A stretch of 63,180 nt of DNA, counting the filler, from Reticulomyxa filosa (lineage: Eukaryota; Protista; Foraminifera): the NCBI GenBank assembly GCA_000512085.1. It is 18 parts of 18 records of this genome, joined end to end, with 100 filler letters (N's around TTAATTAATTAA, not from the genome) between each part and the next. Parts side by side here need not be neighbours in the genome. Positions count along the whole stretch, not along the records: positions 51,936 to 57,702 come from ASPP01037964.1; 17 more parts are not named here. The stretch is one strand, 5' to 3'. A program made the position numbers and the translations under genes. Shown here in pieces: positions 2,950 to 58,759 of this stretch. How positions within the stretch are numbered: the first letter of the stretch is position 1; the number at the start of each line of letters is the position of its first letter. Under the pieces are notes generated by a model, which had not been told where the DNA came from, searched no databases, and saw nothing but the letters and a program-made list of their open reading frames with translations.

Positions 2950-4203
2950 GAAAGAGCAAACAATTATTGAGGCTAAAAAAAAAATAAAAATAAAAATAAA
3001 AATAAAGCATGGATCATCCTCTTTTTGAGACTTTTTTTAAGACGACTGCGTTTTTGTTCCCCTTCAATTATCCGTTTGTGTTCTTCAGTTCGCAAGATTT
3101 CATCAATTCATATACAATTCACACTTGTGAGAAGGAATTTGTGTCTGTGGATGAAAAACCAAGGAAAGAATAAACTTATTAGAATTTGATGATTATCTTA
3201 AGAAGCAGAATGAAAGAAAATACGAGAATTAAAGCTTCTCTTTTTTTAAGGAAGAGTGTAACAACCTATATCAACTTATTGATTAAATCGCAATAATATA
3301 ACTATGCTGGATGGTTCTATGGAGGTGTTGGACTTAAGCATATTCAAAACAGAAAAATTTGAGTTGAAAGTAGAAAACACGTTAACACTCTTTCTAAAGT
3401 TTAAATAAGTCTCATTTACTGTATTTTAAATTTCAATTCTTACTTTTATCTAAATCTACCTTTTGTTGGTCATTTAAAATACATCTGATTTTAAAATATA
3501 AAGAGCTATTATTGTATGATCGATCACTGCCAACACAAATAATAAATAAGAAAAAATATTGACAAGTGGATCAGTGTCTTTTTAAATAGACGAGCGTTTT
3601 TGCTTGGTTTCCCAGGTGTTTGTAGAGAGATGCAAGAAAGAGAGCTCAGCTAAATTAAACGTATAAGAAAATTGAGAATAAAAAGATTGAGAGTTTGATG
3701 AGTTGAGTTATTACAACTCTGGAGTCAGTTATGACTCATGTATCACTACATGTTGTGTTGTAGTTAAATCTAAAATCAACAATTAAAAAAGTAGAAGTAT
3801 CAAGATTCTGCATTTCCTTGCAATTGCAACGCATTAATAATATGTTCACTCCAAATTTTTTAAAAGAACTCAGCGTCTCTTTTCGGCTTTAAGGTGGGCT
3901 GCCCAGTATTTCGTTTGCATGACATATAAATAAATACGTTTAAACGTAAAATAAAGTAATAAAACCTACGATAACGTTTCAAAACGATTGAAATAGCGTT
4001 TATCAATAATTCATTTTTAATCGATCAAATTTATCAAAATTATGTCACACGAGCAAAAATTTTGGAAATAAGATCTTACAAGAGCACAAAATATTATTTT
4101 CAGGACATAAAGAGAGCCCAATATCCACGTTTCGCTGATCTTATATGAAATGACAATAGAAAGATCCCTTTTTTAATTCTCCCTCAAAAAAAACTTGGAA
4201 ATT

Positions 4204-51180: not shown

Positions 51181-52049
51181 ATATTGACTACCAATAAGAA
51201 ATACATTTTTCTCTTTGTCTCACATTCAATAAGAAAGAGCAATTGCTATGTTGAAACCTTTCAACATTCAAGACATTGCTTTTCAGTGATGAAATTGCTT
51301 CCAGCAGATGATTTATTTTCATTATTGCAACACAAATGATTTGAAAAATGCCATTTGCAAAAATGAAAAAAACTAACAAACTTTCATCATTTTTTTTAAT
51401 TCAAAGTCGATAAAAACAGCAAGGTAGCCAAAATATTATATTTTATGGAAAGTTTGTTGAAATAGTGACTGGTAATAGAAGAGAAGAAAAAAAGTGTGTA
51501 ATTCCCTTTCAAACACAAAACCAAGATTTGTCAGATTTCCAAGATTATTCGATGTCAAGACCAAACACAACAACTTCCCCTTTCCATCATCTTTCACAGA
51601 TACAGGATCTATTATCTTTCCAGAATCATTCTATAGCCTCATCCCTTGTTCAAGGGTGTCCATGCTCCAATGCGAATCAACTTTTGGGACATTTTGCAAA
51701 CATTGGCAAAGCTGTAAATATTGGGAATGTCCCAATGTATGGGTTGAGTCAGAGTAGTCCACCATCGACATTTGTGCAGTCAAACAGCGGTATGGTTAAT
51801 CATTGTCCCGTGTCATCTTTGTCATATGTTGGCAANNNNNNNNNNNNNNNNNNNNNNNNNNNNNNNNNNNNNNNNNNNNTTAATTAATTAANNNNNNNNN
51901 NNNNNNNNNNNNNNNNNNNNNNNNNNNNNNNNNNNAAAAAATAAAAAATGACAAATGGAAAAAAAGATTGAAAGAGAAAAAGAAAAAAGAGAAAAAGATA
52001 TAGAAAAAAATAAAAAAGAAAAAAAAAAAAAGCAATAACAGTAGCAAAT

Positions 52050-54880
52050 ATAATTCCGATGCTACATCATTAATTTTTTTTAAGTTGTAATGGCTCTCAC
52101 TCGAGAGCGATTTTGCGCGTTTCCAAACGTTGACGAGCTTCACATCTCGCGCCATAATGGAAGATTGTGGAAATGTCAATCTCATTGTCAACATGAGCAT
52201 TAGAAGGACTTGTGTGATTACGTTTACGGCGAACAAGTCTTTACATATTGTTATTGGAGTGGCAAAGAATCAAAGATGGCGCCTGCGAACAATAAAAAAG
52301 TGATCGTTGTGGAAATTACGCCTTTTAAACTATGAACAACAGATGAATGGAGACTGGTCGATACCAAAACTTACGGTATACTTGCGCATACTCACAACTT
52401 TGGATTTTGGTTCATGAGTGTGCTGATGATATGAATCGTGAGCTCGCGAGGCATTGGCATTGATGATAGGTGAAGATAGAGCTGGCTGCATTTTTTAACT
52501 CACTCCTGCTAGAGTCGTGTTCCTTGTGTGTATCGATCCAGGAGACAATTTAGCAAAGATAATTGGCGCTTGTTCGACTATGGACTACAGGCAACGTGTT
52601 AGATGATAATCAATACTTTGTATTCGCCGCATTATCATAGCACTTCGTGAAAAATAAATTGTATGTTACCAATTTGTGTTTGTTTGAGTAGAATTCGAAT
52701 AATCAATTTTGAATTGTAAAGCCATAGGGACCGTTGGCGTACTCAAAAATCACGTTCAATCATCGCATGCAAGAAAGGAAGAACAAAGAATACATCCAAT
52801 AATAAAGAAAAGAATCATTGGATCGCTAATTCAAACATTGTCGAATGGGACACATGGCGATGATGCGAGCACTTCCAATAGCAAGCTTTATCCAAGGTCA
52901 AGGTGTGTCTGTCATCACAAGGGCGAAGAGATTGGGTGAATTTTGTAGTTGGAAGAAGTCTATTATATGGTAACACTAGAACAATGGAACAAAATTATCA
53001 CAGATTAATAACAAACAATCTAGATCTTGGTGCCTCCAAAACATAAAAACAAGTTCGCCAAGAAGAACATAAAAGAAGACGGGTGAAAGAGATTTCAACG
53101 CTATGGTGTAGCAACGGCTGCAGCGATAGAAGTTGTCATAAAATATCCATTGATGGCGATCGAGCAAACGACTATCACCAGGAGAATTGCTCAATGTAAA
53201 AGTGATCCAATTCGGTGGAGGAGTTGTCTAAGACACCAGAAGGCAAGAAGATAGCAAAAAAAATTTCGAGCATATGTATATCGTGTTGGATTTTTTTTTT
53301 ATTTATAAAAATAGCACAATTGGTCGGCTTTGTTAAGTTTGTCCATGTAATCGTTTTTCATGTCTGGAAACGCGCAAAGTCGCCACTCGCAGGTGTCGAC
53401 TAAATTTCAATGTCGCGACCCAATGGAAAATTATAAATGAATGCGGCAATTTCAAGCAGTAGTAATCCAAAGTATCGTAAAGAACGTTTACAATCAACAT
53501 ATGCGCATTAAAGTCTCTGCGGATAATTGTTGGCGAAGCAAGGCGCTGATAGATCGCAATTCGACGACTTTTTTGGTGCTACTGGAACAAGGGAACACTA
53601 GTCGTTATGGAAATTGCGCTAATTTTGTTAACGTAGAGATTAAGCACTCGTGCCGAAACTAGTCGTATGCGTGCGCACATGCACGACTTGCATTTTGAAT
53701 CGTCAGCTCGTGATACATTGAGCTCTATCTCTTTCTTCATGCCTGTAGCATTTTTCGGCTCCATCGCTGCAAGGGTTGTGTGCATTGCGTTTGTCGAACA
53801 AGCGCCTATTATATTGCCAAACTGTCTCCTTGATCGGCTATGGACTACTGTCGACGTATTGGACGGCACTCAAGAAAGAGAGAAAGAAGAACAGCAGCGA
53901 ATACGTCCAAAAAAGAAATTACAAATGATAGCCTCATTCATTGTATCGCCAATCCAAAAATTGCTGAATGAGTGCATTTGTGATATGTGCGATAATTGCC
54001 AACAACGACCATTATCCAAGCTCAAAGTGTGCATCTCGTCACAAGGGCAATAAGAGCAGATGCATTTCGTATTTCGAAGATATCAATTATATATGACAGT
54101 TGAAAAAAATTCTCCAAGTTCAATCGCAGACATTCTGGACCTTGGTGCTGCCGGAATGTAAAAGCAAAAGAAAAAAAGGAAAGTGAAAACGATGTCCACA
54201 TTATGGTGTAATAACGACGGCAGCGATTGGACCGACGAAAAAGTGGAAGACGATTAAGAATAAACAAAATAATCGATATTGCGATCGAGCGAACCACTAC
54301 ATCTAGTGAATCATCACATGTGAGAGTGGTTCAATTTAGTTGTGCGAGACTAACAAGGCACCAGCAAGCAAGAAAAAGATTACGAAGATAAATAGTGTTC
54401 CGAAATTATACCGCGTTGGACTTGTTTAAAAGGAAAGTAAAAAAAAAAGCAAACAATCAATCGGCCGGCTTTATTGAAATCTGTTATGGACTTGCTCTTT
54501 ACGTCTCGAAACGCGCAAAGTCGCCACTCGCGGGCGTAGACTAACTTCCAATAGCACCACATACCAATGGAAAATACCAAATATGGCAATGTCTAGAAGT
54601 GGTACCAAAGTATTGCAAAGGACTTGTTTGCTATCAACATATATGCACACAAGTCTCTGGCGCTGTGCCAAGCCGACAATTATCCGCAAAGATGGTATCC
54701 GACGGCGATCTACTGGCGCCAAAGAGCAAGGGAAAATCCGTCGCTATGGAAATGGCACTAATTGTATAAATGCAAGACAATAATCGAAACACACATATTG
54801 GGCACCCGTGTCGAAACTGGTCGTGTGTGCGCAAATTTTTGCGCGTGCTCATGGGAGGAATCGTAAGCTCCCAGGCGACA
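52050..54880. repeat. Three tandem degenerate ~1.2-kb paralogous units (A ~52050-53310, B ~53310-54455, C ~54455-54880, partial)
   Basis: Shared collinear blocks: aatggaa, aagtct, tcg.t.tggaaat, gaatcgt.agctc, tatggactac, cacaagggc, cttggtgc, tatggtgta and gcgatcgagc. Third-position-biased divergence suggests a coding origin; many stops. Confidence 0.8.
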
Positions 54881-56036
54881 TCGACCATTGCGCACTTGCA
54901 AACATGGACGAATTTCACATAGTGCGCTCAATGGAAGTTGCTGCACGGGTGTGAATGTCAAACGCAGTCCAATGGCGACAACGACGAAATGCAGTCCGTT
55001 CAATTTTTTACTCATTTGTCAATTGTTAACCATCGGTCTGTGTTGTGTGCGCCAATATTTGGATGCCGATGCTTTATTCCACGATTTGATTTTTGGTATG
55101 CGCGGTAGAGCTAATGTTCTTTCATCTCAAAAACGTAATCGCTGTGGATTACCAAAAACTGAATCATTTGGATTCGAAAAGTGGAAGTGTCTACCATTGA
55201 CAAGACCGCCACTCAAAAAATGGTGCTCTAGAAGACATACCTTTCAATGATATCAATTTCCCCAAGTATGTCAATCGTCTAAAATAACGGAATACTTGAC
55301 GGAAACAATGTCATTGAAATCGAAGCGACATTCGCAAGACCTCAAGGAGTTGCTGTTATTTGATTGATCGTTTGTGCTCCTGTCCTCTTTCCAGTACCTG
55401 ACGATATAATTCGTGCTGGTCCATTACTTAAAAAAGTTTTTATATACATTTTTTAAAAAATATATGTACATATTCAAGAACTAACAGCAACACAACATCT
55501 TTATACGTACATTGATTATTCATTTATGTGTATATGATAGGTGTTACTTGAAATTTTGATTAGACATTTAAAGGTGTATCAATAAAGTATTGGAATGCAG
55601 ATGGACATGTTTTGCTGTTTACACTGTCATTAGTGCTGAAGCGAGTTCCCAGCGACAATTGTGACAACAACGGCAATGAAAGTAAATAGCAACCTCATGG
55701 TTGAATTGTTGCTAATAGAAACTCAATATGTCGCCGAATCATGGAGACCACACTACAACGTACGCGCCTGTCATTTTTCCAATAAAATATATTTGTTCAT
55801 TATTGAGCAAATATCTATTAGCAACGGCATGTATCGAATGTGGATCATAGTATTGCGTTTTGGATGACGTATAATTGGAAAAAAATTGAAGGTCCATATC
55901 TTGTAATGTGGTCCATGACGGATTGAAAGTAAGTCGAACAATTGAAAGGTGAGCTGATGATTATGGTGACTATGTGTGCGGCCTATAATCCAAGTTAATG
56001 TTATAATGTGACTGGAGAATAGCTGAAACATTATAA

Positions 56037-56445
56037 CACACGTATATAACATAGGTCTTCAAAGAATACAATCATATCTATCGAGAAATTGGAAAGGGGG
56101 TTGCGTTGCCAGCAAGAAAGGGTAAACCAAATTGGTGGCATATTCGATTACAAGTATTTGATACTTGCCTCAAATTTTGATTGAAAAATTTTTTGTTGTG
56201 AATTGTGTTTCTTTTGATTTTTTTAATAATACTGCCAATCCTCCTCCAGTTCATCTGATATTTCCTATCAATTATGCTCATCGTAAAAAATTTCTGAACT
56301 TTAATATTTTAAATCTAAAAGAAAGCAGAAAACATGTAGATAGATTTGATTTGGTTTTCACTTTTGTCTTTGAAAAAATGGATAATTGCGGGTGATAATA
56401 TGCAATAGATTGGTTTTGCTATTTTCTATTGTTTAGAGTTGGTAA
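56037..56445 (+). repeat. Interspersed repeat, copy 2
   Basis: Homologous to 39844-40230, which lies on a different contig. Confidence 0.8.
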
Positions 56446-56791
56446 CAATTTGAGTTATCAAGTGTTATAATAAGTATAAACAATTGTTAGAGTCAGATGA
56501 ATAAAATAAATTGTGTTGAAGTACAGATTATCTTTCAAAACAAAAATTCGTATAATTTTCAGCCAAATTTTGAAAGTTCGAACTAATATCACCACCTTTT
56601 TAAATTTGGGTGCTTTATTGATGCAATTATCGAAGGAAATACTTTTTTGTTTTAAAAGGCTATTTTGTCGAAGTGTTTTTTTCCTGTAATAAAAATGTGG
56701 AATCTTATATTAAAAAAAAGTTATCACCTACGAAAAGACGTCTTACTTAGAACAATCTCTTGGAGACAATGAATTCCAGTTGAATTTTACA

Positions 56792-57700
56792 TCAAATTTC
56801 CAGTTTGCGGTAACTGTTTTGATTTTGGTGTAAATTCTTTCCGTAAAAGTTCATGGCGCCACGGAAGGAGTTGTTGCCGGCGAAAGAAAAGAACGTCAAT
56901 GGGACAGTGATATGAAGATTAATTCCGACTTGTCCCGCTTCAATTTTGCGTTCGGTACAATCTTGCAGCAGTTCCACTGGTAGTGAAAATGGCAGTGTCA
57001 TTACCATAGGCATTAACATCAGTAAAATTAATAATCTCATCCAAGGTGCCACATCTTTGACTAGCAACACAGGACCAAAGATTTCTTCATATGAAATCAA
57101 ACAATAATTTTGTTCAACTCTCTTCTTCCCGGGCATGATCAATAAATAGTGATTTGCATTGCTTGCTAGATAATGTAACTTTGTATCAAGTCATGTGGTT
57201 CTATTCCAGTGATAATAGTAGTCCAACGAAGTTGCCTTTTGGATAATCTTTGACTTTGCAGTTTCTGCCATCTAATACTACTTTTATGCCTTCATCAATA
57301 GCAGACTGAATAATATCATTTACGCGTTGTTTAGCTTCAGGTGAGATCAAATGTCCAACTGACGTGTTTGGTTTGTGTCCTGTGTTTACATCATACGTCT
57401 TTCTAATTTCAATCAATCCAGATCCTGTTTTGCTATTTATCCGAGGATATATACATTATATGGCGTCCATACACGACATTACATAACATTTTTTATAGTA
57501 ACAAAGAATTTAAAGAAAAGGAAATTAAATATATAAATACAAATATAAAAAATATATGTACATATATAACATATAAAAGGTGCTAACCAGTTGCTGCTTT
57601 CTCCGACCAGTAACACCAGGCAAAGCGATACACCTCTAACCAGCGGACCCAAACAACGCTCATGCACAACTTGGAGCAAGCCCTTTGGGAAGTTGGCACG
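56792..57700 (-). pseudogene. ALDH6A1: Methylmalonate-semialdehyde dehydrogenase (ALDH6A1/MmsA) pseudogene
   Basis: FPKGLLQVVH, LISPEAKQRV...VVLDGR...YPKGNFVG, EEIFGPVL, YGNDTAIFTTSG, IEAGQVGIN and SFRGAMNFYGK. Frameshifts, a TGA at a conserved Cys, and a large internal deletion. Confidence 0.85.
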
Positions 57701-58759
57701 ATNNNNNNNNNNNNNNNNNNNNNNNNNNNNNNNNNNNNNNNNNNNNTTAATTAATTAANNNNNNNNNNNNNNNNNNNNNNNNNNNNNNNNNNNNNNNNNN
57801 NNGATCTCGCTTGTCTCGGCTGCTTTGTCGAATCGAAAATACGAGTTACCATCAGCTTCATTGTGAATACAATCATTAGGAGTTAAAATCTCAGCTCGGA
57901 TACGACGGAACCAGTTATTTTTATGAGTATAAAAACTCGATGCACAGTTGGGTCCCTCTATTAAAAATACAATAATATAAATAATGGTCGTACTTAAAGT
58001 TAAAAAAAATGTTCACTTGCTTAACTTTTAATGGTATCGTCCAAAATCAGCAAATTTTTTGTGATGTTATCGTCGTTTGGATTGGAATCTGTCGTCATCT
58101 TCCTTAACTTTTTTATTGAGCGCAATGCTCCAAATGGGAGAAAAATGGGCTGGCCCTTTTTGAAGTAGCTGTTAGCTAGTAGTTCTTAACATTTTTCCAA
58201 GCAAACGTAAAGTTAACAAAAATATTAAATACTGACTCTAAATTGATAATTTTATGTTATCAATATGCTTTGTACAGTATTGATGCAAAAACATGACCCC
58301 AACTGTTGAACTTAGTATTAATGATATGTAATGCAAAAGTTTAGGCTAAAACAAAAATTTACATGATTTGCGTGCACAATTTAGCTGAACATTTATGCAA
58401 GTTTTTTTGGCACTTGCCGTAGCAAGGAATCAAGCTTTTTTTATTGCAAGAGTTCTTTCATACGAAGAAAACGAACTTAGTTTTTGTAACTAGAACTAAC
58501 AAAAAATCAAGAGAAATTGTTCACTACGACTTTAGAAGCGAGAGATTTAGCCTGTGATTAAAGTTACCAAAGGCTATTAAGTGAATACTTTGACACACAA
58601 ACTATTGTTTGCGTTGTTTTGTTTTCCCAATATTAGAATCCTTCTTTAATGGAAATGTCTTCCTCATGAAAGAAGTACTTGATCGTGTTCAAGCTAGGTA
58701 CAAAAAAAAATTGATCAAATATCAATTGTCTGTGTATTCATTCACTGCGTTTGTTTTTC

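Follow-up and report, generated by a model that had tools for sequence, protein, structure and literature searches.

Organization of the array

The stretch of DNA analysed here (the window, 63,180 nt with filler included) comes from the foraminifer Reticulomyxa filosa, and the piece of it under study spans positions 51936-57702 (record ASPP01037964.1). At 52040-54966 this piece carries a decayed tandem array built of two sub-units, X (~560 nt) and Y (~480 nt), arranged as X_A-Y_A-X_B-Y_B-X_C-X_D, with X_C truncated and X_D reduced to a fragment. Between the copies of X, four short segments (seg1 to seg4) are reverse-complemented exactly in place, and these are true in-place inversions. The parts of the array are as follows.

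52040..52613, X of copy A; collinear with B 53313-53873, and with C up to A 52445
52614..52764, stretch of ~150 nt present in A only, between X_A and Y_A (from the global alignment of A and B)
52815..53283, Y of copy A; collinear with 53938-54429; control region, flip-free
53313..53873, X of copy B
53938..54429, Y of copy B
54458..54870, X of copy C; truncated at the equivalent of A 52445
54867..54966, X of copy D; a fragment of ~100 nt, fourth partial copy

The array has a period of 1.14-1.26 kb and its copies are 71-77% identical. The start-to-start spacing of the units is 1.26 kb from A to B and 1.14 kb from B to C, the former being 1.26 kb because copy A holds the ~150 nt extra at 52614-52764. 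Copy B runs from the end of its X sub-unit (53873) straight into the homologue of A 52765. When the flips were corrected, ungapped identity over X was 74% for A-B, 77% for B-C (seg2 flipped) and 71% for A-C; over Y it was 73% for A-B. The initial annotation had described units A, B and C as collinear tandem paralogues on the same strand. The alignments agree with that description and add copy D, which it did not include. Positions 54867-54937 of this fragment align forward to A 52093-52163 (70.8%, E=4e-4), and 54949-54966 matches A 52167-52184. Downstream of 54966 no further similarity to the units was found.

At the junction of C and D (~54862-54870) a GCTC microhomology links the equivalents of A 52445 and A 52090. 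The join is of the kind left by a microhomology-type deletion or duplication. A purine-rich, A-dominated low-complexity tract of ~100 nt occupies the left edge of the piece (51936-52035), and shorter A/T runs recur at every unit border.

Four segments of X are inverted in place

The inverted segments were recovered alike by a repeat finder, by self-BLAST at word size 7 and by Smith-Waterman searches. Strand signs denote the orientation relative to copy A.

Seg1, copy A, 52097..52128, +; reverse complement of B (26/34) and of C (25/33)
Seg1, copy B, 53362..53392, -; flipped relative to A and D, forward to C (29/31)
Seg1, copy C, 54503..54533, -; flipped relative to A and D
Seg1, copy D, 54870..54901, +; in the orientation of A, forward to A (20/34, P=0.004)
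Seg2, copy A, 52245..52270, +; forward to B (14/27, P=0.034), reverse complement to C (14/27, P=0.003)
Seg2, copy B, 53520..53546, +; reverse complement of C
Seg2, copy C, 54660..54686, -; flipped, bracketed by TCTCTG..CAAAGA
Seg3, copy A, 52457..52483, +; reverse complement of B 53721-53743
Seg3, copy B, 53721..53743, -; flipped relative to A
Seg4, copy A, 52534..52578, +; reverse complement of B 53793-53836
Seg4, copy B, 53793..53836, -; flipped relative to A

At all four segments the homologous intervals align far better on opposite strands than on the same strand. For seg1 in A and B, 26/34 positions match as reverse complement and 16/34 forward; the corresponding values are 21/27 and 10/28 for seg2 (B-C), 20/28 and 11/28 for seg3 (A-B, with 0/2000 shuffles as good), and 39/45 and 28/51 for seg4 (A-B). 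Over the four segments, reverse-complement identity is thus 71-87% as against 36-55% forward. The flips are also conservative in length, with 32/31, 27/27, 27/23 and 45/44 nt in the two states of seg1 to seg4 respectively, and they lie within a few nucleotides of where the collinear flanks would place them. Four flips had been located from the sequence alone in the initial annotation, and self-BLAST and Smith-Waterman searches placed each of them within 1-3 nt of where it had been put.

Correction of the flips raised the A-B matches from 341 to 371 and lowered the mismatches from 155 to 128. One event per segment would account for the apparent cluster of mismatches, the flipped segment having then diverged like its flanks. 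In ordinary alignments such flips look like mismatch clusters and inflate divergence; here, correction converted 27 of the 155 A-B mismatches.

Controls for the reverse-complement signal

Local reverse-complement scores were compared with those from 300 dinucleotide-preserving shuffles per unit pair, in which the best score averaged 11.4-11.8 and reached a maximum of 16.5. Seg4 scored 31, seg2 19 and seg1 18; scores of 18 or more, as at these three segments, occurred in 0 cases among the shuffles. In a second analysis, a 27-nt window was slid along the collinear alignment and compared with the reverse complement of the homologous interval. This in-place scan gave peaks of 9-17 at the four segments of X (9 at seg3) and one further peak, of 13, in the A-C comparison at a hairpin next to seg2 (hairpin 1.5, described below). 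Across the Y control (366 windows) the score never exceeded 5, and no reverse-complement match above the null was found there. Seg1 to seg4 are not self-complementary, and conserved palindromes therefore do not account for the signal.

Distribution of the inverted states among the copies

Different copies carry different combinations of flips. This had been proposed from the sequence initially and was confirmed when the orientation of each segment was scored. At seg1, A and D share one orientation and B and C the other, with B and C differing at 2/31 bases. At seg2, A and B have the same orientation and C alone is flipped. At seg3 and seg4, A and B are opposite, and this part of X is missing from C. 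For these copy-specific states to arise, the genealogy of the copies must have had flip events on three or more of its branches. The seg1 state common to B and C, with only two substitutions between them, was passed on when a later duplication took place. Identity between a flipped segment and its counterpart is 71-87%, much like the 71-77% of the flanks, which marks the flips as old. Taken together, the flips read as old, fixed and recurrent, and as neither a single catastrophe nor a current flip-flop.

A further candidate, seg0, lies at the Y/X border.

B 53284..53312, seg0, tentative fifth flip; a T-run facing the A-runs of A 52012-52040 and C 54430-54457

Its reverse-complement match is 18/21 in the searches and 20/31 by orientation scoring, in a low-complexity sequence for which the shuffle null is unfair, the runs being strand-skewed. 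Seg0 was left out of the flip count because of this low complexity; tentatively, the poly(A)/poly(T) tract is a possible fifth micro-inversion, of the pure A/T kind. By majority state only, the odd copy is C at seg2 and B at the tentative seg0.

Sequences at the segment edges

Inverted or palindromic microhomology of 3-7 nt is present at every segment edge. Seg1 is enclosed by TACG..CGTA in copy C, seg2 by TCTYTG..CAAAGA in copies A and C, and seg3 by the imperfect arms TGATACA..TGTAGCA in copy B, and seg4 ends in tetranucleotides (TCGA..TCGA/TCGG).

At seg1 a longer repeat was detected when 40-nt flanks were compared across copies. The left flank in B and the right flank in D are reverse-complementary at 17/21 positions (P=1.5e-4, 20000 shuffles; ~0.006 after correction for 37 tests), and weaker matches lie at the same positions in the B/A, B/C and C/B comparisons. 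The two arms are:

53328..53348, left arm (U) of the imperfect inverted repeat flanking seg1, copy B
54902..54922, right arm (W) of the imperfect inverted repeat flanking seg1, copy D

It thus appears that seg1 forms the spacer between the arms of an old inverted repeat, imperfect and ~20 nt long, or else that the flipping event created that repeat. Either way, a layout of arms plus spacer would be the expectation from template switching. The edge repeats of the other segments may have been eroded by the ~25% divergence that followed.

Directly left of seg2 lies hairpin 1.5, whose stem (GGACTTGT/ACAAGTC, 8-10 bp) is conserved in A and C.

52206..52244, hairpin 1.5 of copy A; stem AAGGACTTGT/ACAAGTCTTT, loop of 19 nt
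54618..54657, hairpin 1.5 of copy C; stem GACTTGT../..ACAAGTC

The loop of this hairpin was considered as a further inversion on account of a match of score 18 between A 52207-52242 and C 54618-54655, and was rejected, the conserved stem driving the score. The orientation of the loop relative to C is ambiguous (P=0.078), and it was therefore not scored as a flip.

Coding potential of the repeat units

In tblastx comparisons between units, all six frames were about equally similar, with stops throughout. No significant domain was found by Pfam in eight open reading frames (ORFs) of the repeat region, the best being PLAC8 at E=0.036, below its cut-off. The longest of the ORFs (128 aa, 53667-54050) gave 0 matches by phmmer against 1.84 billion representative proteins, and exact look-up of ten ORFs in a protein collection found none. 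The repeat units had no Rfam match at E<=1, and the 28-nt seg1 pattern had no match in metagenome contigs. Among the ten longest ORFs of the piece, Pfam identified only aldehyde dehydrogenase fragments, which lie outside the repeats, and no recombinase. The repeat units are non-coding, and the flips accordingly have no known bearing on gene function.

Density of the inversions

The mismatch fractions in X are 0.257 for A-B, 0.229 for B-C and 0.288 for A-C, which correspond to Jukes-Cantor distances of ~0.32, 0.27 and 0.36. The three-copy tree amounts to ~0.48 substitutions per site, or ~220 substitutions in X and ~145 in Y. The density of flips is then ~1 per 55 substitutions for X alone and ~1 per 90 for X and Y together.

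Human and chimpanzee differ by 1.23%, or by ~35 million substitutions. Set against 2,377 inversions, this number of substitutions gives a density of ~1 per 14,000. The density at the array exceeds it per substitution by ~150-250-fold, a figure that is to be read with the tiny numbers involved, the differing detection methods and the choice of this locus for its oddness from a very large scan. The initial impression that four flips in ~500 bp lie far above ordinary expectation thus held.

The human-chimpanzee inversions counted above are ultramicro inversions of 5-125 bp, of which the pure A/T class is the commonest (Hara and Imanishi 2011, PMC3227671). A strict human-chimpanzee set contains 59 micro-inversions of 17-33 nt with flanking inverted repeats of 3-75 nt, 36/59 of them <=7 nt (Potapova, Kondrashov and Mirkin 2022, PMC8755829), and microhomology-mediated break-induced replication (MMBIR) has been proposed for the very short arms (PMC8755829). 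The flips described here resemble these events in being short in-place reverse complements of a similar size range with short, often imperfect, inverted repeats at their edges, and the hominid A/T inversions have a parallel in the tentative poly(A)/poly(T) flip. They differ in number, since hominids have 59-2,377 per genome at ~1.2% divergence and the array has 4 in ~560 bp at ~25%. They differ also at their edges: every event of the strict hominid set has a convincing inverted repeat on its flanks, whereas here one is seen at seg1 only, the others being at chance level.

Mutations of the micro-inversion class are known but rare, and template switching and MMBIR are debated as their mechanism. 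The locus is a further example of this known kind of mutation at remarkable local density. It is also a compact natural one, with four length-neutral flips (five with the tentative seg0) in ~560 bp beside an equally old flip-free control. A more far-reaching proposal, that the rate of micro-inversion per substitution in this genome or repeat family lies about two orders of magnitude above that of hominids, is rather doubtful. If true, it would mean either a lineage-specific, hyperactive strand switching or a local inversion hot spot without a cause visible in the sequence; it would be measurable genome-wide and would give a new mutational signature for Rhizaria. Should the density hold genome-wide, the organism would lend itself well to studies of the rate and mechanism of micro-inversion.

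Origin of the inversions

We infer that strand switching during replication or repair, either template switching or MMBIR, probably made the flips. According to this scheme, the tandem copies arose by duplication and decayed as a non-coding array. Since or during the copying, X segments of 23-45 nt would have been replaced by their own reverse complement without change of length. The nascent strand would briefly switch to a complementary template and then back, the switch being primed by the 3-7 nt of inverted microhomology at the edges and, at seg1, by the imperfect inverted repeat of ~20 nt. The flips would then remain as fixed, inherited mutational scars, and would not be products of a recombinase or of a programme.

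A hairpin or template-switch cause had been among those offered initially, and it fits the in-place, length-neutral nature of the flips, the microhomology at their edges, the ~20-nt arms at seg1 (P=1.5e-4) and the hairpin by seg2. Support for switching also comes from the poly(dA:dT) tracts at each unit border and from the 8-10 bp stem of the hairpin that abuts seg2. The C/D microhomology junction and the A-only indel of 150 nt suggest that replicative rearrangement may have taken place at the locus.

Template-switch mutations are clusters of mutations explained by a single event in which a nearby complementary strand is copied (Loytynoja and Goldman 2017, PMC5453318; Walker et al. 2021, PMC7954356). 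Poly(dA:dT) tracts are reported as enriched at template-switch sites (PMC7954356). The flips are alike in that one event accounts for a mutation cluster and in the association with poly(dA:dT), here at the unit borders. In yeast, one study reports that template switching at an inverted repeat with a spacer inverts the spacer (PMC8604942); seg1, with imperfect arms and an inverted spacer, has the layout described there. A difference is that only 5.5% of the hominid gold-standard template switches are length-neutral (PMC7954356), as against 4/4 here.

Non-coding plastid DNA undergoes recurrent, homoplasious small inversions of hairpin loops. These are similar to the present flips in being short, recurrent and non-coding, and the 8-10 bp stem by seg2 resembles such a hairpin. 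The plastid inversions are unlike them in that the locus here is nuclear-type, the stems at seg2-seg4 are of 3-7 nt, and the loop of the one good hairpin is not clearly flipped. A plastid-type stem (~8 bp or more) directly around the flipped loop was not found for seg2-seg4.

Several observations weigh against strand switching as the cause. The initial annotation had described the segments as flanked by short inverted repeats; such repeats are present at the edges, but within <=14 nt of the edges their score does not rise significantly above that at 3000 random positions of the units (mean 4.09 vs 3.69, P=0.16), and the description is therefore uninformative alone. Single-stranded DNA folding of X did not depart from shuffles (z +1.1 and -0.3), Y behaving alike, and short inverted repeats with loops of 10-60 nt were no more numerous in X than in shuffles or in Y. 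As X is neither hairpin-prone nor rich in inverted repeats, the present sequence does not explain why X has four flips and Y none. An ordinary rate is no explanation either, since ~4 flips per 220 substitutions in X far exceeds the hominid figure. Seg2, seg3 and seg4 each have one state in a single assembled copy, and the mechanism itself is not observable from sequence.

A variant of this scheme differs in its timing. The flips and the duplications could have had a common source in low-fidelity replication, break-induced or fork-stalling, of the MMBIR or fork stalling and template switching (FoSTeS) type. Such synthesis changes templates frequently over its first kilobases, so that every copy would be born with inverted patches of its own. 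This variant would fit the occurrence of different flips in different copies, and the short microhomology that joins truncated C to D and the A-specific 150-nt indel are what replicative rearrangement would be expected to leave. The restriction of the flips to the duplicated array is likewise in its favour, as the collinear pseudogene nearby for methylmalonate-semialdehyde dehydrogenase (MMSDH) has none. However, the flips are found in X only and not in the co-duplicated Y, and the tentative seg0 (in B alone) and seg2 (in C alone) would need a reversal if the copies had simply arisen in the order A, B, C. The divergence of the flipped segments cannot separate birth from later events. A common birth of flips and duplications is unlikely.

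Still less probable is an artefact, in which the flips would come from chimeras of whole-genome amplification or from the assembler. For seg2, seg3 and seg4 the presence of one state in only one copy would allow it; both states of seg1, on the other hand, are each found in two diverged copies (A and D; B and C). Every flip resumes the original strand at the homologous base with no gain or loss, unlike amplification chimeras. The flanking repeats of 3-7 nt are far below the word size of an assembler, so that graph ambiguity offers no explanation.

The initial annotation had also raised a programmed system, either shufflon-like site-specific inversion or ciliate-like scrambled segments re-oriented in development. 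Like shufflons, site-specific invertases and ciliate scrambled genes, the locus has several short, invertible-looking segments, clustered in ~500 bp, combined differently in each copy and with short inverted repeats at some edges. The likeness ends there. No motif is common to the edges of the four segments, and the flanking inverted repeats are at chance level; a shared inverted recombination site of about 19-31 bp was not found at the segment borders, which have only the 3-7 nt repeats, and conserved pointers are likewise missing. No coding potential was found in any frame, and Pfam detected no recombinase in the ten longest ORFs. Scrambling of the ciliate type would require re-orientation to lengthen the open frame, and none of the 36 combinations of flips generated in silico did so; in copies A, B and C the longest stretch free of stops stayed at 83, 138 and 101 aa or became shorter. 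The segments have diverged by 13-29% from their counterparts and are thus frozen, and one state was inherited by two copies. Neither form of programmed system is supported by these results, and their involvement is very improbable.

That chance or conserved palindromic motifs imitate inversions is next to impossible and is already refuted for seg1 to seg4: the score-18 match between A 52207-52242 and C 54618-54655 does indeed derive for the most part from the stem of the conserved hairpin rather than from a flipped loop, but shuffles never reached 18 or more, Y has no in-place signal, and the four segments are not self-complementary and align poorly forward.

Neighbouring sequences

Beyond the array, the minus strand of 56800-57702 carries a broken MMSDH gene, of the aldehyde dehydrogenase family, which extends past the right edge of the piece. 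At least three frameshifts put its parts in different frames, and at least four in-frame stops occur where relatives carry G, Q, K and C. Two AT-rich introns are present at ~57420-57585 and ~57110-57200. The gene is a pseudogene. It is collinear with its relatives over ~650 coding nt and contains no inverted segments; outside the array nothing else on the piece is decayed, and as a control the pseudogene is weak. With an intron-bearing pseudogene adjoining the array, the setting of the locus is by all signs a pseudogene-bearing stretch of nuclear-type DNA.

In the unique region past copy D (54970-55420), short inverted repeats are in mild excess (P ~0.04-0.07 vs shuffles), and at 55242-55319 there is an imperfect hairpin with 28-nt arms that are 75% complementary and a 22-nt spacer. 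An AT-rich element of ~34 nt with the palindrome ATATGTACATAT occurs twice, at 55454-55487 and 57546-57579 (82% identical), the second copy lying inside an intron of the MMSDH pseudogene.

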